Shown here piece after piece: positions 108 to 61,440 of a stretch of 64,000 nucleotides of DNA. The translations under genes were made by a program, and so were the position numbers. The notes under the pieces were generated by a model. That model was not told the origin of the DNA and made no database searches. It was given only the letters and a program-made list of their open reading frames with translations. Source of the stretch: Felis catus. Lineage: Eukaryota. The stretch's first letter is position 1. The number at the start of each line of letters is the position of its first letter. Where the stretch lies: positions 73,036,001 to 73,100,000 of the forward strand of contig NC_058376.1 in NCBI RefSeq assembly GCF_018350175.1, read 5' to 3'.

Positions 108-340
108 AGTAGACTGGTGAATGGGGACTGAAATCCAAGTTGTGTGTCCTTACTTAGAGATGGGACTTCCCAGAAGGGGCAGGACAAAAGTGCCCTGTAA
201 GCTACCAGAGGCCCCACGGGGCCCACGTTAGATCCAACAGGGCCAGACCCAAGGCTTAGGGAAGGATGAGAACAGGCTGAGGTTGTCCTGAACCCAGACG
301 CTGTTTTCTTTGTTGCACGCTATAGAAATTATATGCTTAG

Positions 341-403
341 GAGGCTGCCTGACAAACTGCAGATGAGTACCTTCAGGTCCCGGGAGAAAAGGGCTGTGTT
401 GGC
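341..403 (+). pseudogene. ACADVL-like pseudo-exon equivalent to exon 13
   Basis: ag at 339-340, then 63 nt reading EAA*QTADEYLQVPGEKGCVG vs [27 protein letters not shown] (21 aa each). TGA at 350-352 replaces Trp. No GT donor; MER20 starts ~7 nt later. Confidence 0.85.
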
Positions 404-409
404 ACTTCT

Positions 410-606
410 CAGTGGAAGAAGTGAAGGTTTTACCCCCAAGGGACATTTGGCAATGTCTAGAGAATTTTTGATTGTCATGATTGGGGGCTGCTACTGGTGG
501 TTAGAGGCCAGAGATGATGCTCAACACCCTACAATACCCAGGGCATTTTCCCACAATAGAGTTATCTGATCCAAAATGTCAATAGTGCCTCTAGTGAGAA
601 ACCCTG
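410..606 (+). mobile_element. MER20 (hAT-Charlie) DNA transposon
   Basis: cagtgg...gggacatttggcaatgtctagaga...ggctgctactgg...ccaaaatgtcaatagtgcc...gagaaaccctg matches the MER20 consensus layout end to end. Confidence 0.85.
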
Positions 607-1469
607 GGTTACATGACAGGGAGAGGGATGAGTTTCCTCCACTGGATGTGTGGAAATAATGTGGTTATTTTAATCTAATATTTAGGAAGAGCCATCTCTA
701 TACTTTAGAGTTTCCCTTGAAGTAAAGCTTCCTCCTCTACCCCAGCCCTACCCCACCCCACCCTCATGTCCTTCGCATCTGCCCCCCCTCTTGTCAGGGG
801 AAGACAAGATGCTCAAAAGAAACTGCTGTATAAGATTGTGCGAGTGTCCATGTGCACGTGTCTTTGCATGTAGGAGAAACAGAAACAGACTGAGAAACAG
901 AAAAAAAGCACCCGGAGATGGCGAGAGAGATGTGCAGAGAAAATTAGCTAGTAAGGGAGTCAGGGAAAAGGGTAGATGGAAAGAGAGAGAGAAAAAAAAC
1001 ACAGAGGGGTGACACCTAACTAAATTTTTTTTTTCAACAAACACCATGGAAATTCAGTGATAACAAGTGAAGGTCCCTGTGTTCTCCAAGCCCACAATCT
1101 CCAAGAGACAGAGGCCAGCAGCTGTAATACCTGTGGAAAGTGGAAAGCTCACCATAAAATCATAAAGCTGGAGGGAACACGGAGAAGAGGCTGACATTCT
1201 GCAGGGTGGGGGAGGTGCAGGGCAGAGGGAGGTGTGCAGAGTGGGGGGCGGTGACCATCCAGGTGAACGGGGAGGAGGAGCATTTTGTCAGGTGAACAGA
1301 AGAAGTGAGGATTCTTGGGAGGTGGGTTTGGGGAACAGTAGAGGATTGGGAGGTGAGGACGGAGCAGCTGTGACTCCCCCATAGTCCCCCAGAGCAGGGT
1401 TAGACCTTGATTCCATGCTTGAAGTCGTACACATGGAGGATGCCCAGAGTTTCTTGTGTAATATTTCCT

Positions 1470-1775
1470 CACCTCTTTCAACTGTTACTCAAGTCTTACT
1501 TTATCAGTGAGGCCTACCCTGGACAATTTCAACCTACCTTCCTGGTATTCCCAGCCCCCTTATCTGTCTCTATCTATGGAACTCGTTATTTCATAACATA
1601 CTTTATAATTAATAATTTCGTGTTTGTATTCCTTGACTAGCATATAAGCTTTGTGAGAGCGGGGATTTCCTTTTGTTTACTCAAAAGAAATAGTGGCACT
1701 CTAGAATAGTGCCACATGAGTAGAAAGTGCTCAATAAATATTTGTTGAGTGAAAGAATGAATGAATGAACAAACA
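1470..1775 (+). mobile_element. L2 3' end fragment
   Basis: Typical L2 tail ...gtgctcaataaatatttgttgagtgaaagaatgaatgaatga. Confidence 0.7.
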
Positions 1776-1851
1776 AACATGGCATTGCGAGGCCTTCCCC
1801 CATCGGCCGGCCCCTTCCCAGAACTTTACGTTTCTGACAGCTGCTCCTCAG

Positions 1852-2438
1852 ATGTAGTCATTCTCTAACATTGCATAACAAATTACCACAAACTTGGGGG
1901 TTCAAAACAACACACGTGTCTTATCTCACAGTTTCTATGGGTCAGACGTCCAGGCACAGCTTACTGGGTGTTCTGTTTAGGATCTCACAAGGCTGCCAGC
2001 TAAGTGGCTCAAAGTGGCTTTCTGGGGAGGTGTGGGGGTGGGGGGCTGTTTACAAGCTCCCTCAGATTGCTAGCAGAGTTCAGGTCCTGTGGCTGTGTGA
2101 CCAAGGGCTTCGGTTTCTTGGTGGTTGTTGGCTGGAGGCTGCCCTCAGTGCCTGGAGCCCACCCGCCATTCCTTGCCATATGTGATTCCCCAACATGGCC
2201 ACTCGCTGCCTCAAAGCCAGCAGAAGAGATAGACACTCTAACAAGGTGGGCACTACAATTTTATGTAACGCAGTCATGTAATCACATACACGTAATCACC
2301 CATATCCTCTCTCCTTTGCCATTGATGAGCAGCAAGTCATGGGTCCCACCCATGCTCAGGAGGGGATCACACAAGGATGTGAACACCAGGGGTTGGGCTC
2401 ATGACCGTAGGGACCATTTTAAGAGAGAGTCCACCACA
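1852..2438 (-). mobile_element. MLT1-type (ERVL-MaLR) solo LTR
   Basis: cataacaaattaccacaaact...ttatctcacagtttctatgggtcag...ccaccaca, MaLR LTR in reverse orientation. Confidence 0.75.
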
Positions 2439-2941
2439 GGAGGTGACAGCTGGAGGTGAGGCTTCTCCTTTGAACACAGTCCCTTGGTTTGATACACAAC
2501 TCAACCTCTGTACCGTGTTAGAGTTCTTTATGTATGTGTCTGCCTCTCCCACAAGTTTGGGGGCAGGGACAGCTCTTGCTCTTGTCTTTAGAGTCCGTTT
2601 CTAACACAGAGCCTGGCACATAAGTCGTCAGTTTGGGATGAATGGGCAGAAGGATGGGTGGATGGATGGTGGATGGATTTATGATTGGAAAAATGGAAGG
2701 AAGGCAGAAAAGAAGGAAAATGTGGTAACAAAACAAGGGTAAAGGCAAACTACCTGGCTAGAAAGAACGTGGCCCTCACCTGAGAGAGGACCACTCGCTG
2801 TGAAGTAAGACGTGAGCACTAAGTTATGGATCTGCTCCCAGTCCCAGCCTTGTTCCTGGAGCTGCCCCTTGGAGTCTTTCTGTCAGGTGTGCCAAAAAGG
2901 CAGGCGGTTCCTCTCTCCCAGATCTTCTGTTTTCTCCTCAG

Positions 2942-3041
2942 GAAATAAGAGTGCAGAAAATCATGAGGGATGTCCAAATGTTCCAAGTATGAAGGCACCA
3001 ATGAAATCCTGCAGTTCTTTGTGACTTTGGCAGATCTGGAG
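2942..3041 (+). pseudogene. ACADVL-like pseudo-exon equivalent to exon 14 (catalytic Glu exon)
   Basis: Pyrimidine tract + cag acceptor (ag 2940-2941) and gtaatt donor (3042). 100 nt = 102 minus a 2-nt deletion near 2987; reads EIRVQKIMRDVQMFQ(v)YEGTNEILQFFVTLADLE vs [34 protein letters not shown]. Confidence 0.92.
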
Positions 3042-3721
3042 GTAATTTCCTAAGAAATAAGCGGAGGGAAGAAAGCATTCCTTTGTAATCCTCTCCAAGG
3101 CTCTTGGCAAAGGCTTTTGATAACCAAGTTCTTTGTGCAATAAACACCGAGTTTTGAGCGAAACTGTTTTGAGTTCTTGCTGCAGTGTGGGATAGTGAAT
3201 CCAGGCTGTTCCAGGCCTTGGCCTCTGAGGCCCAGATGGAAGCCAGGACACAGGCAGTCCGAGTGCTGGAGGTGGGATCTCAGGCTGCCCTTTCTACGTG
3301 GGAACCGTGGGAAGGCAACAGTTGGGCAGACTTCACTCATGAGGCTTAGTGTGTTTTCCACCCAGTAAGGCCTCATGGGCAGAAAGATTCTGACATTTTT
3401 TTTCTGGCTGCGTGTTTTAGACTGGGTGACCTTGGGTTAAACCTTTACATGTGCATCATTTTCCCCCCATTTTGCTTGAGTTTTTAGGATTTATTTTTCT
3501 CACTTGTTCCATGACAGGTAATCTACTTTATGTCAGATGAAGGCCATTAATAGTCAAGGTGGATGAATTGTGACAAGGTCACACTGGAGACCATGATATT
3601 TCTGTCTTTGTTAATTAGGGCCAGACTATAAGCCAGAGGAACTAGTGTTTTTAAAGGTGACAACTAGGCATTTGTATGGGTTCGTGTTTATAAAAACCTT
3701 TGTTTTTTTGTGAATCTGTAA

Positions 3722-3807
3722 AATGCTTGGTGCTTAGTCTCCTGGGGAGTAGACGAGGTGCAGAATCTCTGGATATTCTGACCATGAAGAGAACATCAGA
3801 TTCCAGG
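3722..3807 (+). pseudogene. ACADVL-like pseudo-exon equivalent to exon 15 (tentative)
   Basis: T-rich tract ending in AA instead of AG (3720-3721); strong gtaagt donor at 3808; 86 nt, phase 0 to 2 as in the 98-nt ACADVL exon 15. NAWCLVSWGVDEVQNLW is only weakly similar; two in-frame TGA. Confidence 0.5.
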
Positions 3808-4276
3808 GTAAGTTACTAACTTTCAAATAAAAATTTTGCTTTGGATTTCTCTTCCTGTATTTTCTTTATAACATACCAGCATGCCAGCACCAAGCTAAAG
3901 CAGCTTAAAGCAAACCCGGAGAAACCAATGAATAACAATGGGATTTTATTTACTGAGATTTCCCTGAGAGCAAAACAGTCAAGAAGAACTTGGAATTTCC
4001 AAAACACAGCATTCATCCTTGTTTTGAAAGCAATAGCTTCGTTTGATAAGAAGGAAGCTTTAATCTGCTCCTCACCACCTTGGCTCATCTCCTCACTTTT
4101 AGTTGGAGTTCTTCATCTAATCTGTAGAATTCCAAACTATGTTCCTCTGGATCCAAAACCAGTAGCTAGACCTGGAACCACCCTGAGAAACATTAGAAGA
4201 CCCACCAGTTCCCCACTGGGGCCCCTGTATCCTGAGTCCACACTTCAGGCCCCAACTTTTAAAAGCTGACTTTGCA

Positions 4277-4404
4277 GGATGCCTGGGTGGGTCAGTTCGT
4301 TAAGCATCCGACTTCTGATTTCGGCTAAGACATGATATCACAGTTCTTGGGTTTGAGCCCTGCATCAGGCTCTGTGCTGATGCTGATCGCAGAGCCTTCT
4401 TGGG

Positions 4405-4450
<46 letters not shown>

Positions 4451-4521
4451 CCCCCCTCCCCCACCTGTGCACGGGCTCACTCTCTCTCAAATAAATAAAT
4501 AAACATAAAAAAATTTTTTTT
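4277..4521 (+). mobile_element. Can-SINE with (CT)n and 16-bp TSD
   Basis: tRNA-like head, CT tract, A-rich tail; TSD aaaagctgactttgca (4261-4276) / aaaagctgattttgca (4522-4537). Confidence 0.93.
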
Positions 4522-4789
4522 AAAAGCTGATTTTGCACAGGTGGAAAGCTTTTGCCTAAAAGCATCAATAACTATCGGTTCTCTCGCTTGGCACGCAGCA
4601 CTTTGCATGGCACTATAAAGGAACGCAAAAGGAATATAGTCATAGTACTTACACTCTGGTGACAGACATGAATTATTCTAGGGTCACCAGAAACCCTTGG
4701 CCAGGGAACTGACCTTGACTGGGAGCAGTTCCAACTCAGGTAGCACCTGTGCTCATAACCTCTCTGAGTGCTTCATCTTGGATTCCCAG

Positions 4790-4859
4790 GCAACATCAGA
4801 GAAAATGCAGAGCCATCACCTGGCTCATTTACCCAGCATGGGCTCGTCTAGCAGGTTTT
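4790..4859 (+). pseudogene. ACADVL-like pseudo-exon equivalent to exon 16
   Basis: ttcccag acceptor (ends 4789), phase-2 start; ITWLIYPAWARLAGF aligns to LSGLVHPELSRSGEL; ~70 nt vs 73; donor degenerate (ctgtgt). Confidence 0.65.
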
Positions 4860-4964
4860 CTGTGTAGGGAATACATACCAGTTGTTTGTCCTGAGCACAA
4901 CCTGCATGTTCTCAGGGTCCATCTTTATCCCAACCCTTCACCTGACTCCTATCTTGAGTAAGGA

Positions 4965-5185
4965 TTTTTTTTTTTTTAATTTTCTTGACATGTATTTATT
5001 TTTGAGAGAGAGAGAGAGCAGGAGCAGGGGAGGAGCAGAGAGAGAGGGAGACACAGAATCCGAAGCAGGCTCCAGGCTCTGAGCTGTCAGCACAGAGCCC
5101 GATGTGGGGCTTGAACTCACGGAGCGTGAGATCGTGACCTGAGCTGAAGTCGGACGCTTAACCGACTGAGCCACCCAGGTGCCCC
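4965..5185 (-). mobile_element. Can-SINE (SINEC_Fc-like)
   Basis: Full-length reverse SINE flanked by TSD ttgagtaagg. Confidence 0.93.
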
Positions 5186-5833
5186 TTGAGTAAGGTTTTT
5201 GATGGCACAGCTTGGGCTCACTCTCAATAAATCATTCTTAATGGTGTCTGTTAGAATGAAAGACTTGCTTTCCATGGATTTCCCCCTTTCAACATCAGAA
5301 CAAAAGGAAAGAAAAAGATAAACTCAACATCTCCCAATCTCCCTCTGCATCTTTATGATCATCTCTTTCCTCTTGAACATGGGTCTCTCTGACTGCCAAC
5401 TTTCCATCTCTACTCCTATTTCCTCTTAAGAAATGTAACCTCTATGGAGTAGCTTCCAAATGCATGAAAACTTCTAACAAAAACTGCTTTCTTAACGTGT
5501 CAATATCCTTTTGACTTTCTAATATTTGAAGATGCATTTTGATACAAGACCTTTTCTGTCTATCTTATCCGGAATAGGTCCTACCCTCCTATCCACCCTG
5601 GCCCATTTTTCTCTATGTACACAACCCATTCATTCCCTCCCCGCCCCCCCGCCCCCAGTTTCATTTGTTTACTTGATTTTTTGTTCTGTTCCCCGACCCC
5701 CCGCCCCGACCCTGCCCTGTTGGGCTGTAAAGCTTCATGTGAGCAGAGACCATGTCTGTTCTGCTCTCCACTGTAACACTAGCACCTAGCAGAGCACCTG
5801 CCATTTAGGAGAATCTCATTAAAATCTTTGTTG

Positions 5834-5937
5834 GGGGTGCCTGGGTGGCTCAGTTGGTTGAACGCTGACTTCGGCTGTGCTGACAGCTCAGAGCCTGGAG
5901 CCTGCTTCGGAGTCTCCCTCTCTGCCCCTCCCCCACT
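5834..5937 (+). mobile_element. Can-SINE, internally deleted, running into a gap
   Basis: ggggtgcctgggtggctcag head; tgctgacagctcagagcctggagcctgc core. Confidence 0.8.
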
Positions 5938-6097
5938 NNNNNNNNNNNNNNNNNNNNNNNNNNNNNNNNNNNNNNNNNNNNNNNNNNNNNNNNNNNNNNN
6001 NNNNNNNNNNNNNNNNNNNNNNNNNNNNNNNNNNNNNNNNNNNNNNNNNNNNNNNNNNNNNNNNNNNNNNNNNNNNNNNNNNNNNNNNNNNNNNNNN
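5938..6097. other. Assembly gap (N run); others at 9688-9833, 26242-26381 and 44485-44676
   Basis: N characters in the sequence. Confidence 1.
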
Positions 6098-6099
6098 AT

Positions 6100-6520
6100 A
6101 CATCATGGTTTCCTTGGCTAATTAAAAGCGAATGGCAGGGTACAGCAGAGTTGAGGGTCAGCAAGACCAGATGTTTCAGAACCGGATCTTGGGAGAACAG
6201 AGCAGAGTGCAAAGGAGCTGGTAGGGCTGACGAGTCAAATAAATGTGCCTGTCATCCTGGAGGTAAATGTCCATAGCTGGCCCAGGAAACAGAGGAGCCG
6301 AGGGAAGATCCAGGGACGGTGGCACTCGCGTGCCTGATCATGGCTTCATGACAACGAGGCAGGCCACTAAATGACAAGGTGTGTGAACTACAAAATGGCT
6401 GCTGCTTCATGTTTAGCCTCCAAATCTAACGTGAGAATCCCTCTTGCGCCCTAGCCTAACCAAAAACATACAGGAAAGGAAAATGTGGTTCAGCCTACCC
6501 AAGTGGACACAATGCTGTCA
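6100..6520 (-). mobile_element. MLT2-like (ERVL) LTR fragment
   Basis: ctaaccaaaaacatacaggaaagg...gttcagcctacccaagtggacaca resembles a reverse MLT2 terminus. Confidence 0.55.
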
Positions 6521-7654
6521 CTACAGTCAGCACCTACTATTTATTGCGTGCATGAATGAATGCAATAAATTTAGCATTTATTGCATGCATAAATGAATGG
6601 ACAAACTCTCATGGCAGCAAGAGGCATTTGGCCACCTGCTCTCACCAGAATGAGAGCCCCATGATGGATGGGATTTTTGTGTTTCATTCATTGTTGTATT
6701 CCCAAACACCTAGAGTGGCACCTTGCCTGTGTACATGCTTAATAAAATTTGTGGAACGAATACTGAATGGATCTGGCCCAAAGTCAAAGGAACCTGTGTG
6801 GAGTCATTAGAAAACACAACCAAATGAAAACTTTTCTATGCTGCAGCATGTGGGAAATCATGAGGAGCCATTTTATACATTTAGCATAAAGGAGCATAAA
6901 ATGGAACAAAGGAAAAAGCGTATTTCCTTCTCTCACAATGTGTCCAAGGGGAGCAAAATATAGAAGCATTTCAGTGACAGCAGGGCAAATATCGTAAATA
7001 ATGAGTTAATTACAGAGAAGCCTGGCTACTGAAAGCCAAGCATCCTTGGGGGAAAAGAAGGGAGAGGAAGTTAGAAGCATTTTCTTCACAACCTTCCTCA
7101 CAGTCCATGTGGGGTGTGACACAGCAGAGTAAATCCTCCAGGGGCCTTGCCAGGCTGTGAAACACTGACAGGCACAGATACCCCCAGGAACAGTCCCATG
7201 CATTTAAAGCCAGGCTACACCCTGCGGTAGGTAGTTTGAAAGGCCAACCTCCCATGACTTGGTCCCGGGAGGGCTCAAGGTTAGCTAACTCAAATGTTCT
7301 CTATCAGAAGAATAGAGCTTCTCTATCAGAAGGCCTTGCATGAACTGATGTAACTGAGGCGTGTCTCTCACCTTTTGGTCTCCCTCCCCCTCCACAAGAT
7401 CTCAGTTTTGTGTTAAGACATGTCTGGCTCTCTACCTCTGCAACTCTGTCTATATGTCAGAAATAGTATTAACCGTGGTTCTCTCTGACCACTGGGATTA
7501 CTGCTTCTATATGCCTTTCTCCTTTGTGCTCTCCTGTGTTTTCCACATTTTTTGCATTAGATATGAATTACTTCTATAATCACACATACGAAAAACAGTT
7601 ACAAAAGTACTTTAAAGTATTACAACTAAGAGTGTAGGAAAATTTTTTTGTATC

Positions 7655-8072
7655 TTTTAAAAAATTTTTTTTTCAACATTTATTTATTTTTGAGAGACAG
7701 AGCGTGAGTGGGAGAAGGGCAGAGAGAGGGGAGACGCAGAACCCAAAGCAGGCTCCGGGCTCTGAGCTGTCAGCACAGAGCCTGACGCGGGGCTCGAACC
7801 CACAAACCGTGAGATCATGACCTGAGCTGAAGTCAGACACTCAACTGACTAGCCACCCAGGCGCCCTACTATTTTTTGTATTTTTAAAAACATTTTTTTT
7901 TCTTAAGTTTATTTATCTTTGAAGGGGGTGGGTTCAGAGAGAGAATCCCAAGCAGATTCCACACGGTCAGTGAAGAGCCCGATGCGGGGCTTGAGCTCAC
8001 GAACATGAGATCATGACCTGAGCTGAAATCAAAGAGTCGGACATTTAGCCAACTGAGCCACCCAGGCACCCC
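7655..8072 (-). mobile_element. Two tandem Can-SINEs (7655-7866 and 7881-8072)
   Basis: Two reverse SINE bodies ending in ccacccaggcgccc and ccacccaggcacccc. Confidence 0.92.
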
Positions 8073-9082
8073 ATGTTTTGTAAGTTTTTAAGATAAATAT
8101 TGGCAGCATCTTACATCTCGACAAGAGCAACTTAAATAGATGCTACTTCCAAGCTACAGTATCACGGGTGAGATACCTGTGGTATATCAACAACATGGTA
8201 CTTGCATGTGGAGGCATAGCACCCTGGGGAAGTTTATCATCAAGGGTTGTTGGTTTTCAACTTGAATTGGACTTCCTTTGATTTTTATACTTTATATAAA
8301 CCGAAAGACGATGTACTCTATTTGTCTGCAAAAATGCAATAAAAAATTAAAACAAAAGGAGTTACCTTTCCATTTATTACGTGTAGTATCTGCAGACTTG
8401 TTTGGCTAAGAATTAAAGAAAAGATGTCAAGACTGAGCCACCCAGGCACCCCGTCACTAAAATTCTAATGCTGGTTTTGATCTGACCAGTAGAGGTTTAC
8501 CATTGCAAAGGTGCCTTTCTCCTGGAGTCCAAGGGCCCAAGCTCTCAGCCACAATGCTTAAGCGTGTATCTGTGATAAACTCTTCCTCTCAAATAATCAG
8601 TCCTGCAATTCGGAAGAAGAATCAACTAGATGATTTGGATCCTGCAAATAAACTCACCTATGGAATCATGCAATGTTCCCATTCTCAATGAGTTATTTTG
8701 TTCTGGAGAGACGACTTTTATATTCACCGAATGTCCATTAGACTGAGTGCTAAACAAGCTCATGGGAGTAAGACCATGGGAATGACACAGAGATGAAATT
8801 CTTCTGGTCTCAAAACACTCTGTAAGAACAAGATGCACTTGGAGTCTGACTCCATCTCTCCTGTCTGGGGGTAGGTTACTACAGTTCATCAAGAAAACTG
8901 GAATTTGCAAAATCTCCAAATCCTTCCTTGGGGAATCTTTGCCTCTTGGCTTCCTTACAGAGCTCCTTTGTGCCCATAAGACAGGTTTAATAATCACACT
9001 CTGGATTGCACAACTATTATCACTCCCATCAGAATAATACAGGGCAGAAAAATAGAACCAGTGTTTTGCATTTCCTTTTCAG

Positions 9083-9145
9083 ATAAACAGTTTCATCTGA
9101 AGAGAAGAGCAGATGCCATTTGCCCATGACTATAGTCCTATCTTG
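9083..9145 (+). pseudogene. ACADVL-like pseudo-exon equivalent to exon 18
   Basis: tttccttttcag acceptor, phase-1 start; KQFHLKRRADAI..MTIVLS vs [23 protein letters not shown]; 63 nt = 73 minus 10 (frameshift); phase-2 end at a gt donor (9146). Confidence 0.85.
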
Positions 9146-9833
9146 GTGCTGGGGCTGAAGGGTCTGCAGCAAACAATTTTACAATAGAAGCATCTTCCTC
9201 TGCTGTTCCCTCCAAATGCCTTCCGTCCTCACACCTGTCTCTCTGGCTTTCCTCCTCCATGGTGACTGCATATAGAAGAGGAATAGGGTCCCAATGATTC
9301 TTGGTGCTTGCAAGGGGGGCAACAAGTTCTGGTGAGAGCCGATGGCTTAGAGGCTAGAAAGCAGCCAGGGGACTTCAAACATTTAAAAGATGCAAGCAGG
9401 TTAAGTAGGGATCCAGGGATTTTTAATGGTTCCCAAACTAATCTGATGCTCCGCTAACTTCACTTTCTGATTCCCCTAAACTGCCTGGGGTCCTGTCTTC
9501 TTCCCATGACCAAACCACAGTCATAGAATGTTAAAGTATCAAGAAAGAAAATGAAACGTTGATCTAGGCAGAAAAAGTGCCTTGCCAAGGTCAGCTGCAA
9601 GTTCATGACAAAGCTGGGTTTAGAACCCTCCTGACTTGATTCACAGACCTGTGCTCTTTCCAGAAGCCTAAGAAGAAGATTCTTTACNNNNNNNNNNNNN
9701 NNNNNNNNNNNNNNNNNNNNNNNNNNNNNNNNNNNNNNNNNNNNNNNNNNNNNNNNNNNNNNNNNNNNNNNNNNNNNNNNNNNNNNNNNNNNNNNNNNNN
9801 NNNNNNNNNNNNNNNNNNNNNNNNNNNNNNNNN

Positions 9834-10573
9834 ATCGCACTACTGGGGATTTACCCAAAGAATACAAAAACACTAATTCAAAGGGATACATAGACTTGTT
9901 TATTTATAGCAGCATTATTAGCCAAAATGGAAGCAGCCCAAGTACCCATCAATTCATGAATGGATAAAGAAGATGTGGTATATATACCAAATGGAATATT
10001 ATTCAGCCATAAAAAGAATGAAATATCACCATTTGCAATGACCTGGATGGAGTTAGAGAGTATGAAATAAGTCAGAGAAAGACAACTAGCATATGATTTC
10101 ACTCATATGTGTAATTTAAGAAACAAAAGAAGCAAAGGGAAAAAAAGAGAGAGAGAGGCAAACCAAGAAACAGACTCTTAATTATGGAGAACAAACTGAT
10201 GGTTACCAGAGGGGAAGGGGTGGAGGGATAGGACAGATAGGGATGGAGATTAAAAAGAGCACTTGTCATGCTGTAGGGTGATATAGGGAATTGTTGAATC
10301 ATGATATTATACACCTGAAACTAACATGACACTGTAGTTAATGAACTAGAATTAAAATTAAACTAAAGGGGCACCTGGGTGGCTCAGTCACAATCTCACA
10401 GTTTGTGAGTTCGAGCCCCACGTCTGTGCTGTCAGCACAGAGCCTGGAGCCTGCTTCGGATTCTGTGTCTCCCTCTCTCTCTGTCCCTCCCCTGTTCGCA
10501 CTCTGTCTTGCTCTCTCTCAAAAAAAAAAAATAAATAAAAACATTAAAAAAATTAAACTGAAAAAAAAAAAAA
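9834..10573 (+). mobile_element. L1 3' end (9834-~10365) followed by a Can-SINE (10368-10573)
   Basis: L1 ORF2 end/3' UTR motifs (atggaatattattcagccataaaaaagaatgaaat, catttgcaatgacctggatggag); SINE head ggggcacctgggtggctcag. Confidence 0.88.
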
Positions 10574-11242
10574 GGATTCTGTAACTGAGCTGTTATGGAT
10601 ATTCTCACAGATTGAGTCCCTGGGTGTAAATAATAATGGCCTGTCAAGATATCAACACTGAAATAAGACAAACTAGAATAAACCTTAGTTGTGTATAGCA
10701 TCATTGAAAGGAGAGTCCAAACTCTCTCAAGCCCAAGAGTCTCGGGGGATCTGAGTAGGATCTAGTAACACAGTGGATATGTTCAGTCACGTGAATTCTC
10801 CCTTCCCTCTTCTGTCCACCCAGTGACCATCTGCAGTATGAATCATCCCTAACACCATTTAGCTCCAGGTGCCTGGGAGAAAGGAAGGGGCCTTGAAAAG
10901 CACACAAGTTAACCAGCTCTCTAGGTGCACATAAGACCACATACGTGAGAAACAGTTGCAGGCCCAAAGACAGCCTCCTGATACTCAAACCCATGCCTAC
11001 GCCCATAGATCCTGCTGAGGTCTAAGATTTGGCAGCGATCTGGTTATCTGGCTCACCAGAATGGGTAGCAGTTAAGCTTCATATTTCAAGCTGGAATGTT
11101 CACTATGCCACTTGAATTATTCTATTTGGCAGTCTACACTGCAGGACTCCTAATGTAGAACTGGAAAGTCCTCTCCACTTATCTGATTTTCAAGTCTAAA
11201 GTCCTGTGTGTGTCCCTCTGTTCCACAGGATGTCCTAATGTA

Positions 11243-11318
11243 GCCATTTATCTCCTGGACCAGAGATGTGCTTCCTCCCATCCCAACAAGGATGCTGTGG
11301 GAGGCCTGGTACAGTGAC
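11243..11318 (+). pseudogene. ACADVL-like pseudo-exon equivalent to exon 19
   Basis: AIYLLDQRCASSHPNK / MLWEAWYSD (one frameshift) vs [25 protein letters not shown]; ~76 nt as expected; donor appears mutated (ctaggc at 11319); 5' boundary uncertain. Confidence 0.7.
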
Positions 11319-11757
11319 CTAGGCTGGACTGACCTCGCCACCCCATCTGCTCACAGGGACAGTGCTTCCTTTGTACCATTGTTTGTGGGGTTTTTTTTTT
11401 TTTTTTTGGTGTTTTTTTTTTTTTGTTTTGTTTTGTTTTTTACTTTTCCTGCTCCTCAGTTTCAAACCCAGTCCCTCAGGGCCTCAGTTGAAGCCAGCCC
11501 TGCCCAAGTACATCCTCACTCCAGAACTTGTAATTATTCCCTAAGCAGGCCCTGACATCTTTTCAAATGTTCCTCCTGAAGTGGGAGGGTCCTGAGAAGT
11601 CCAGTCACTTCCTCTCGAATGGAGACGCTAGCCTCTGGAAAATTCCACAGCCCTGGGCCCTGGTTGGTGGGGAAAAGGGGGCAAGGGGTGAGTTGGGTTG
11701 GTGCCTGAGTCTTTAGGCCATCAGTCAGGTTCTTTTGAGGGAGTTAGGGTGAGTCTC

Positions 11758-11805
11758 CAGGAAGTGAAATTCTCAACGGGGAGTAGTTCCTATGACAACA
11801 GGAAG
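11758..11805. promoter_or_regulatory. Candidate RFX X-box flanked by ETS-like sites
   Basis: GTTCCTATGACAAC at 11786-11799 fits GTHNYYATRRNAAC; caggaagt at 11758 and caggaag at 11799. Motif match only. Confidence 0.35.
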
Positions 11806-12185
11806 ATTGTCTCAGGCTAAACTGTAGAGAAAAAGGCAAAGTATATGTGTTTATCACTTAGGGTGGTGGGGTGGGAACCTCCTTCTTTCTGTACATGAGC
11901 CCCTTAAGTCTCAGAATCACTGGCTCAACAGAGAAAGTCCCTTTAACCAAGACCCAGGGCCAATGCAGCTCTCACTAAGGTTTTGATACCAAGTGTGAGC
12001 CTATGGGTACTTGAACTTTCTCATGTCAAATCAGATGGTGGCCTGAGCTAAGGCATTGCCACTGGAGAGAGAAGGGATGAGACTGAAATTTAGGAGGATG
12101 GATGGAGAGAATGTGGGGACTGAAGATATGTAGGTGTTGAAGGAAAGGGACTCAAAGGTGAAAATATCAAGATATCTACTTCACA

Positions 12186-12310
12186 GGCTTGCTGCAAGGA
12201 GTGGAGTTAACACAGAGGCCCTGCAACAGTATCTGAATGCCATCGGGTCAGTACCTGCGAGCTGCTTTCCTCCTCGTCGTCCTCCTCGTCCCTCTCCATG
12301 TCCATTAAAG
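12186..12310 (+). pseudogene. ACADVL-like pseudo-exon equivalent to terminal exon 20 (only first ~13 codons supported)
   Basis: cttcacag acceptor (ends 12185); with a +1 insertion it reads AAARSGVNTEALQ vs AAARIREGMAALQ with identical spacing; similarity fades afterwards. Confidence 0.6.
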
Positions 12311-31044: not shown

Positions 31045-31242
<198 letters not shown>

Positions 31243-37410: not shown

Positions 37411-38195
<785 letters not shown>

Positions 38196-58792: not shown

Positions 58793-59499
58793 GTTTTGTT
58801 TGTTTCTCCTTTGGGATTCTTCTTAGAACCACCTAGACAGCACCCAAGATTTCTGGCCAATTTTATGCAGTGTTGGACAACTGGGTATCTTAAATGAATT
58901 TCCTAAAATTTGTAGGGAGACACATTATAAACTGCAATTCTAGAAAAATTTCCCTGCAATATTTTTCCATGGGATTACAAACACATAGGGAGAATGTGGT
59001 AAAATGGGGGAAGACCAGACCCAGAAACACCAGAGGTCAGAAGTCTCAAATTCTATGACCGCACACTACAATTGACATTAGTGGTTGGGTCACTCTTCTC
59101 TGTCCTTTAGCTATGCCAATGGTAAAACTAGGTTAGACTATTTCAATGCTGGTATTCTATGATTTCATAGAAGTCAATATTCTGTGATTTCAAAGCAGGT
59201 CTCTAAGGAGCATTCTAATGCAAATATTCCATGAATTTATAATAGCTAAAACATTTTATGCGGTTAAATGGAAATAAAGAGGGGACACATATATCATTTC
59301 TCTGAAAATCAGATAGTATCTTTGGGGAATGATGTCACCTTGAGCGTCAGTTTTCCTATCTATAAAACAGAAATAACAATATGGACCCTATAAAGTGGTG
59401 GGAGTGAGAGAGCTGTAACTCGCTCTCCCTCTCTCTCTCTCTTCCTCCCGAGAGGCAAACCAGAAACCACTGAACCTTCTCTAAAACAGCTCCTGGGCT

Positions 59500-60255
<756 letters not shown>

Positions 60256-61440
60256 AGAGTGATTTAAAGAAGACAGGAGCTATGACGTTTATCATTTTTG
60301 TTTTTTTAAAAGTATATGCGCAGATGTAATATTTTGTAAAACAAACATCTGATCTTTGAACTTTGGGAAATTAGGAACATTAAAGAATCAAATAGAAGTT
60401 TCAGAGCTTCACCTGTTAAGCTTTTATAATTTCTTAACTTCGTATCTGAGGTATCTAAAATTTTTCAATGATAAAAGTCTTTTCTTATTATGTGAACCCT
60501 TTAAAATCTGGTCTCAAGCCAATAGGAGACCTCTCCATAAAAGAGACCCTTTTCCCCATTTTTCTAATTGAGCTTCCACAGTCATTCCTTTTTAGGTGAA
60601 GATCATGCCTCACTCAGTCTGGTATGGTAGATCCTGGTTTGTCATTTTCTCTCCACTAAGGGGAACAAAAATTTTCCAAGTCTTTGGTCTATATTTAATG
60701 AAAATATACTTACTGCTAATTGTTTTTGTATCTGCAGCAAGAATTAGTACTTTCTAGTCTTTGTTCCTCTTGGAAGGCATAACTAAACTCAGAACAGTTC
60801 AGAGAGTAGCAACTTAAAATGATCTGGTGATGTTTTGGTCTTTCATACTCACACATACACATGTAAAAAGATGTTGCCCAATAGCATTTTGTTATAGTAA
60901 ATAATTGGAAACAACCCAAGGTCTGTTAATAAGGACTGGTGAAATATTAATTATGGTACATTTATATAATGAAACAATACACCAGCCTTTTAAAAAGAAT
61001 GAGATAGATGTATTTGCACAGAGGAAGATCTCCAAGGTGCCATGCTCAATGAAAAAATAAGTAGTACAGTACAGTAGAGTGTAAAACATACCACTGGATT
61101 AGAAGTGCTAGGGGGCTTCGGTGTTGTTAAGATAACTAAAAGTATAAAGACTCCTCATTCTGGAGAGAAGTTACTGAAATCTGTAGTCATAAAGGTAAAA
61201 TGAGGATGTTTGTAAAAATTTAAAATATTGCAACTAGAGCAAACCTGTTCAAATATCAATTTAGGTCTATAAAGTGAACTACTGCTATCAAATTTCCCAC
61301 CACATAGATTTATGGAAATTTGTGTTACCTTAAAGAAAACACTAAGTAGGATGACAGCATAGAATCATGGCCTTTGGATGCTTGACTTACATTCTCTAAC
61401 AGGAAATTTTCAAACCTGTCTTTTGGGTAAGCTGCTTCAA

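Follow-up and report, generated by a model that had tools for sequence, protein, structure and literature searches.

The 3' third of a probable unitary pseudogene for a VLCAD-like acyl-CoA dehydrogenase upstream of an APOD-type gene in the cat genome

The human acyl-CoA dehydrogenase (ACAD) family is usually counted as eleven genes. The classical mammalian unitary pseudogenes, e.g. GULO in primates and the vitellogenin relics, show what the loss of a single-copy gene leaves behind, namely exon remnants that lie in conserved synteny beside a live neighbour and decay neutrally. Within the ACAD family two genes are of interest here: ACADVL, the gene for very long-chain acyl-CoA dehydrogenase (VLCAD), and ACAD9, which encodes a complex I assembly factor. 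We analysed a stretch of 64,000 nt of the domestic cat (Felis catus; contig NC_058376.1, positions 73,036,001 to 73,100,000, forward strand), hereafter called the window, in which an earlier note on the DNA had proposed a dead VLCAD-type gene upstream of APOD. We find that positions 299-11861 of the window, on the + strand, hold the 3' third of a unitary, non-processed pseudogene, the dead placental-type ortholog of a group of living genes that we call clade B, and we give this reading a probability of about 0.88. Clade B is our label for genes that automatic annotation names 'VLCAD, mitochondrial-like'. The earlier proposal is thus partly confirmed: the fossil is real, and the exon map drawn for it was right only in part. 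ACADVL itself lies on another chromosome (17p13 in human) and, unlike the relic, has very short introns.

Five spaced segments of the + strand match VLCAD-type proteins over their C-terminal third and follow one another in protein order. They were found with tblastn, with a scan by a hidden Markov model (HMM) and with a protein-to-genome dynamic programme (DP) that tolerates frameshifts and introns, and each was scored in per-exon scans against a background of about 1,150 bins of 100 nt. The exon numbers are '-like' labels that follow the ACADVL numbering used in the earlier note.

299..402, + strand: exon 13-like remnant (tblastn match 326-394 with all clade-B proteins; DP block 326-400, score 44)
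2942..3041, + strand: exon 14-like remnant (per-exon score 82-92; found by tblastn, DP and HMM scan)
3880..3978, + strand: exon 15-like remnant (tblastn E 8e-7 with the Dromiciops protein; 50-56% identity to marsupial proteins)
9083..9145, + strand: exon 18-like remnant (top match of the whole window, both strands, with all three profiles)
11731..11861, + strand: terminal-exon remnant (tblastn E 0.009-0.02 with ostrich and turtle clade-B proteins, 39-40% identity)

The exon 13-like remnant corresponds to residues ~386-420 of P0395, the clade-B protein of Sarcophilus. A segment at 341-403 had already been reported there and is real: it matches the motif EAAW...GG.G, reads EAA-stop-Q..DE....G with a TGA replacing the conserved Trp codon at 350-352, and no background bin scores as well. 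The splice acceptor that had been placed at 340/341 is not supported, as the homology runs on upstream without an intron to ~299-304, past a 2-nt deletion near 325; the supposed acceptor is probably a mutated Ser codon. A further stop (TAG) stands at 338-340, the GG.G motif is degraded and no GT follows position 402. The exon 14-like remnant, 100 nt long with an AG acceptor at 2940-2941 and a GT donor at 3042-3043, lies exactly where the earlier note had put it (2942-3041) and likewise has no equal among the background bins. Its motif RD.R...EGTN.IL...L.G is broken by a 2-nt deletion at ~2988-2990, and the resulting frameshift makes it read ..RD....F.. and then YEGTNEIL in another frame; in the (Y/F)EGT motif the codon for the catalytic Glu can still be read. 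Among the seven segments of the earlier note these two alone show clear ACAD motifs when translated, the other five being less obvious. The third segment that held is exon 18-like (9083-9145), again unmatched by any bin: 63 nt between an AG acceptor at 9081-9082 and a GT donor at 9146-9147, a length consistent with an internal deletion of ~10 nt at ~9121-9125, reading.QFHLKR.ADA. and then M.IVLS in another frame. Two nearby blocks were discarded, one at 8989-9063 as exon 17, which would leave an intron of 19 nt to exon 18 and is in part the polypyrimidine tract, and one at 9890-9952 as part of exon 18, for which the adjacent frameshifted M.IVLS was preferred.

Exon 15 and the terminal exon had to be relocated. 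The stretch 3722-3807, previously taken for exon 15, scores at background level (81-94% of bins do as well); the exon 15-like remnant is found at 3880-3978, where an open frame of 33 codons follows a CAG acceptor at 3877-3879 and the donor is lost (TC for GT at 3979-3980). This is the most clade-B-specific segment of the relic. Similarly, 12186-12310 as terminal exon is equalled by 28-67% of bins, and the terminal exon lies instead at 11731-11861 (.FE.VR..L..VK.S...), with a premature TAA at 11818-11820 and a frameshift near 11826, past which a ..G.VY match is followed by a stop at 11859-11861. Two further candidates of the earlier note on the + strand do not stand out from the background, which speaks neither for nor against them: 4790-4859 as exon 16 scores 15-20 and is equalled or beaten by 14-49% of background bins, and 11243-11318 as exon 19 scores 18-21 and is equalled or beaten by 15-40% of them. 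Competing weak candidates for exon 19 at 10772-10837 and 11195-11227 are no better than the latter. Between the exon 19 candidate and the terminal exon, at 11330-11530, runs a long T-rich stretch of low complexity that translates to strings of Phe.

Counted together, the lesions of the relic are three in-frame stops, one deletion of 10 nt and two of 2 nt, the loss of a donor and a terminal frameshift; the relic has neither the open frame nor the intact splice sites of a functional coding gene. Its boundaries at 2942/3041, 3880 and 9083/9145 give lengths of 100 (+2), 99 and 63 (+10) nt, which would fit the 102, 98 and 73 nt that the earlier note gives for ACADVL. The remnants are dispersed over 11.5 kb, 0.8-5 kb apart and with AG/GT splice dinucleotides at their edges, and show no retrocopy-like contiguity; the proposal of an intron-containing, non-processed VLCAD-type pseudogene is therefore borne out.

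The signal stands far above the background. An HMM built from ~100 vertebrate proteins was run on every piece of the 64 kb, on either strand, that is free of stops, and the pieces 3874-3978, 2988-3041 and 9070-9117 ranked first to third and 2939-2989 fifth, all on the + strand and in model order. With a profile of marsupial clade-B proteins (P0395 columns 381-631) the DP chain scored 176, compared to 36.3 for column shuffles (sd 3.7, max 45.3; z 38); with the combined clade-B profile, 14 other stretches of 13.5 kb from the window reached at most 37.6. The DP totals were 176 with the marsupial and 133 with the sauropsid clade-B profile, and 123 with the profile of canonical ACADVL. A DP with a low intron penalty stitched together many tiny chance matches and was superseded by the stricter model. 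In the per-exon scans none of the background bins reached the observed score for exons 13, 14, 15 and 18, and for the terminal exon the background fraction was 0.000-0.001 with clade-B profiles and 0.066 with the canonical one. Exon 18 sub-profiles scored 40-49 at 9083-9145 and no higher than 30 elsewhere in the window, and the terminal exon was the top window-wide match of the sauropsid sub-profile (50 vs 32). By BLASTP, the exon 15 piece matched the Dromiciops protein at 19/34 identities (56%, E 4e-12). BLASTP of the terminal exon against a turtle protein gave no alignment; this exon rests on tblastn and the DP.

The relic would now make no protein and appears to decay neutrally. Among 39 codons that are invariant in 40 aligned living proteins it keeps 24, or ~26-27 after one block that had been read out of frame was corrected by eye. 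Loss of the protein would be compatible with a second use of the DNA, e.g. as a non-coding RNA or as regulatory DNA of APOD, and such reuse could be true alongside the pseudogene reading. Metagenome runs labelled as RNA (gut, mammal, feline) do hold 66-96% of the 31-mers of 200-4100, and exon 15 has kept its open frame. These runs, however, cover introns as well as exons, the pattern expected of unspliced RNA or of host DNA carried over, and hint at a felid host; moreover, 33 codons may well stay open by chance, and we consider reuse very unlikely.

To which gene the relic belongs was judged against its living relatives. As a start for the reference set, a degenerate DNA pattern for the VLCAD motif IFEGTNDILR was searched in a metagenome collection and found 120 loci, 22 of them with full-length eukaryote-type VLCAD reading frames. 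A first homologue search with an insect VLCAD from this set returned insects only and was discarded; a search of representative proteins with a metagenome insect VLCAD, followed by tblastn of the returned proteins to the window, singled out P0138, P0122 and P0121, named 'very long-chain specific acyl-CoA dehydrogenase, mitochondrial-like' and belonging to brushtail possum, opossum and a snake. The family was then gathered with P0121 and P0138 as queries. Clade-B genes were found in marsupials (six further ones), squamates, turtles, crocodilians, the paleognath birds ostrich and tinamou, and a caecilian, e.g. XP_036611741.1 of Trichosurus, XP_044525431.1 of Gracilinanus and XP_063162688.1 of Candoia, and also in Sarcophilus, Monodelphis and Vombatus. 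Canonical VLCAD proteins of these groups were retrieved as well, and two species, the gecko Eublepharis (P0457/P0289) and the caecilian Rhinatrema (P0380/P0401), carry a clade-B and a canonical copy each. In P0395 the four Pfam domains of ACAD/VLCAD are complete (the ACAD domains of the N-terminus, the middle and the C-terminus, and the VLCAD/ACAD9 C-terminal domain), and the protein aligns end to end with human VLCAD structures (795 bits, compared to 512 bits for ACAD9). As living clade-B proteins hold the full domain set and align to human VLCAD structures, the ancestral product was most likely a mitochondrial, FAD-dependent long-chain acyl-CoA dehydrogenase of VLCAD-like type.

The living genes are known only through public annotation under automatic names; they are unnamed and unstudied. 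The gene behind the relic is thus no unknown member of the family, its orthologs in marsupials and sauropsids being already annotated automatically. This annotation is unreliable in places, because several marsupial models, i.e. P0398 (Dromiciops), P0122 (Gracilinanus, 940 aa) and P0138 (Trichosurus, 534 aa), look imperfect, with a C-terminus that diverges, ~300 inserted residues or a truncated N-terminus. In the skink Lerista edwardsae two nearby clade-B models (P0291 and P0298; loci 013630 and 013628) may be a tandem duplicate or a split model. Clade-B gene models that are fused or long showed no domains of neighbouring genes. In the EGT motif, Australian marsupials and all other aligned VLCAD-type proteins keep the catalytic Glu; Monodelphis P0399 and Gracilinanus P0122 have Gln at this column (P0395 residue 439; ..RILQGTND..). 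Judged from the residue, the change in these didelphid proteins may mean a loss of dehydrogenase activity, and, within the fuller scenario given below, the opossum Gln hints that the mammalian copy had left dehydrogenase work before the placental loss.

All comparisons place the relic closer to clade B, especially to its marsupial members, than to the canonical ACADVL clade (clade A). Besides the DP totals given above, the per-exon scores sum to 298-338 for the six marsupial clade-B proteins whose C-terminus is normal; the sums for sauropsid clade B are 259-326 and those for canonical clade A 234-276. Models with an aberrant C-terminus gave 310 (P0398) and 273 (P0122). The profile scores for exon 15 are 93 with marsupial clade B, 43 with sauropsid clade B and 56 with the canonical profile, and those for the terminal exon are 43-50 with clade B vs 22 with canonical. 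In exon 15 ~7/33 residues (~21%) equal human VLCAD and 17-19/34 equal marsupial proteins, and in the terminal exon the counts are ~5/28 (~18%) for human VLCAD and 13/28 for turtle clade-B proteins, the human figures having been read by eye from the structure-search alignment to the Sarcophilus protein. Domain content can be read off the same alignments. The ACAD C-terminal helical domain is present, since 326-400 and 2942-3041 correspond to P0395 396-455 (PF00441 spans 304-450 there), and so is the region of PF21343 (ACAD9-ACADV_C), with exon 18 and the terminal exon corresponding to P0395 535-560 and 587-625 (PF21343 at 506-623); the latter assignment was made only via the alignment to member proteins, as the single exons have no direct Pfam match. 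Because clade-B scores and identities are higher, we read the relic as the counterpart of the marsupial/sauropsid VLCAD-like gene and not as a copy of ACADVL.

This bears on the possibility that a segmental duplication of the cat's own canonical ACADVL gave rise to the relic, which then decayed. Exons 13, 14 and 18 score nearly equally with canonical and clade-B profiles, as a duplicate would have it, and lie in regions conserved across the family. Exon 15 and the terminal exon, however, go with clade B, as do the summed scores; ~21% identity of exon 15 to human VLCAD against 50-56% to marsupial clade B is hard to reconcile with such an origin, and so are the kb-scale introns. We therefore regard a segmental duplicate as very unlikely.

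Could the gene be alive and its stops and frameshifts be errors of a draft assembly? There are four runs of N in the window, and two of them lie inside the relic:

5938..6097, no strand: assembly gap between exons 15 and 18; exons 16 and 17, expected in this interval, were not detected
9688..9833, no strand: assembly gap between exon 18 and the terminal exon; exon 19, expected in this interval, was not detected

The gap intervals are exactly those in which exons are missing, and the undetected exons may sit within the gaps. Both gaps fall in intron-equivalent intervals, and since no supported exon comes closer than 543 nt to a gap, the supported exons are unaffected by continuity or frame across them; the exons flanking each gap have the correct order and strand, consistent with the scaffold order. 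The 31-mers sampled from 200-4100 are present to 100% in 14 runs, DNA-type or untyped, from 7 studies. As each of these runs holds all sampled 31-mers, the stops and frameshifts of exons 13-15 are reproducible and not assembly errors. Errors would also have to account for at least three stops, at least three frameshifts and a lost donor across five exons, for the replacement of roughly a third of the invariant residues and for three undetectable exons. A live gene behind a faulty assembly thus is highly unlikely. Lastly, chance similarity in non-coding DNA, to which the non-significance of single exons against large databases and the two chance matches among the segments of the earlier note might point, is excluded by the z of 38 of the collinear chain, far above the rest of the window, by the independent HMM scan with the relic segments at its top, and by the BLASTP match of exon 15.

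The unitary pseudogene of a clade-B gene can also be placed in the history of the family. In a tree of 51 proteins (IQ-TREE quick search, site-heterogeneous model, rooted on invertebrate ACAD9), clade B is sister to canonical clade A, and insect VLCAD falls outside the vertebrates. Clade A includes sharks, ray-finned fishes, coelacanth, amphibians and squamates with a support of 99; clade B, with caecilian, marsupials and sauropsids, has a support of 84, which increases to 96 without the caecilian. Approximately unbiased (AU) tests reject a grouping of clade B with tetrapod clade A (log-likelihood difference 28, p 0.0019) as well as a grouping with bony-vertebrate clade A that leaves sharks outside (difference 22, p 0.0026). 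The split between clades A and B, as far as the protein tree goes, thus appears to predate crown jawed vertebrates. The ancient divergence claimed for the locus is in line with this, as the relic scores with the vertebrate clade sister to canonical ACADVL and the AU tests reject a late origin. Since ACAD9 has invertebrate orthologs (oyster, crayfish, mites), it is not ACADVL's twin from the vertebrate duplication. On the human map ACADVL lies with DLG4, ACAP1, TNK1 and DVL2 at 17p13, and APOD with ACAP2, TNK2 and DLG1 at 3q29, two regions that form a classical paralogous pair. Clade B is thus probably the whole-genome-duplication twin of ACADVL. A fuller scenario, which we consider possible but slightly less than an even bet, is that early whole-genome duplications gave two VLCAD genes, the 17p13-type ACADVL and a 3q29-type twin beside APOD; the twin would survive in caecilians, sauropsids and marsupials and have disappeared from the ray-finned and the cartilaginous fishes and, ~100 million years ago, from the ancestors of the placentals, in whose genomes the fossil would remain.

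The time of loss was estimated from the invariant codons that were kept. They correspond to roughly 0.17-0.22 substitutions per site since constraint ended, which at textbook mammalian neutral rates would put the loss at ~100 million years ago, near the base of the placentals. No placental protein was found among the best 120 matches to a clade-B protein of a marsupial, a ranking in which a placental copy should stand ahead of the sauropsid ones; a loss near the placental base is compatible with this.

Several points weigh against our interpretation or the parts that build on it. Exons 16, 17 and 19 were not found within the window by profile DP or per-exon scans, and the relic documents only about a third of the gene; exons 1-12 would lie left of the window. 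Searches of Pfam and of solved structures (Protein Data Bank) with single exons found nothing, the pieces being too short. The scored set holds no mammalian canonical ACADVL, which was compared by eye only, and the support for orthology with the marsupial gene comes wholly from similarity of sequence. Placental absence was read from a protein search (8000 candidates scored) and not from genomes, and the dating is a rough one-parameter estimate. As to the tree, the search was a quick one and clade B including the caecilian reached only the support given above; the clade-B branch is long (marsupial stem 0.44), so that long-branch attraction could inflate both the basal position and the AU tests, and the groups tested were named after inspection of the tree.

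Further downstream in the window, exons of an APOD-type lipocalin gene were recognized:

31045-31230 and 37914-38111, + strand: lipocalin exons of an APOD-type gene (motif scan; Pfam Lipocalin_2 E 3.9e-7, Lipocalin E 5.3e-8)

As these exons lie downstream on the same strand, the 3' end of the relic faces the 5' side of the lipocalin gene, and the position 5' of APOD given in the earlier note is upheld. The name APOD is taken from an APOD-type motif of ten residues; the residues of the exons differ from human APOD at several positions. At 59400-60300 lies a G+C-rich island (65-73% G+C vs ~35-45% around it) without a tandem repeat, which probably is a CpG-island promoter and would belong to a gene past the lipocalin gene; the island gave spurious low-complexity tblastn matches to fused gene models. 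The window as a whole is vertebrate-typical in composition (44% G+C, CpG observed/expected 0.30), and an Rfam search of all of it returned nothing. In the single-exon searches, one piece of the relic ranked rubrerythrin above any ACAD.

Together with its living orthologs, the relic means that one more VLCAD-type enzyme was present in tetrapods and was given up by placentals. A unitary pseudogene is an ordinary kind of object, and the living gene already is in the databases, unnamed and unstudied; the locus nevertheless lets one ask whether every placental lineage shares the loss, at what time it occurred and which role the enzyme plays where it survives, in marsupials, birds and reptiles. For non-placental models of VLCAD deficiency it implies that two VLCAD activities may be present. 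Moreover, searches based on open reading frames or single exons overlook relics of this kind.

Compared to known systems, the relic resembles GULO and the vitellogenin remnants in its mode of loss, and differs from them in that we found no paper on a third VLCAD paralog, its living gene or its loss. With ACAD9 (8PHE) it shares the VLCAD-type architecture with the extra C-terminal domain PF21343, but ACAD9 is far more distant from P0395 than VLCAD is (see the bit scores above) and forms the outgroup. Canonical ACADVL (human 7S7G, 3B96, 2UXW) is of the same fold family and domain order and has the motifs of exons 13, 14 and 18 in common with the relic; it forms a separate clade, however, and in exon 15 and the terminal exon only ~18-21% of the relic's residues equal those of human VLCAD. 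The closest counterparts are the clade-B genes. These are predicted to be intact, whereas the relic has stops, frameshifts, a lost donor and undetectable exons; but they give the best similarity in every comparison, share its segment order, and residues specific to them stand in exon 15 and the terminal exon of the relic.

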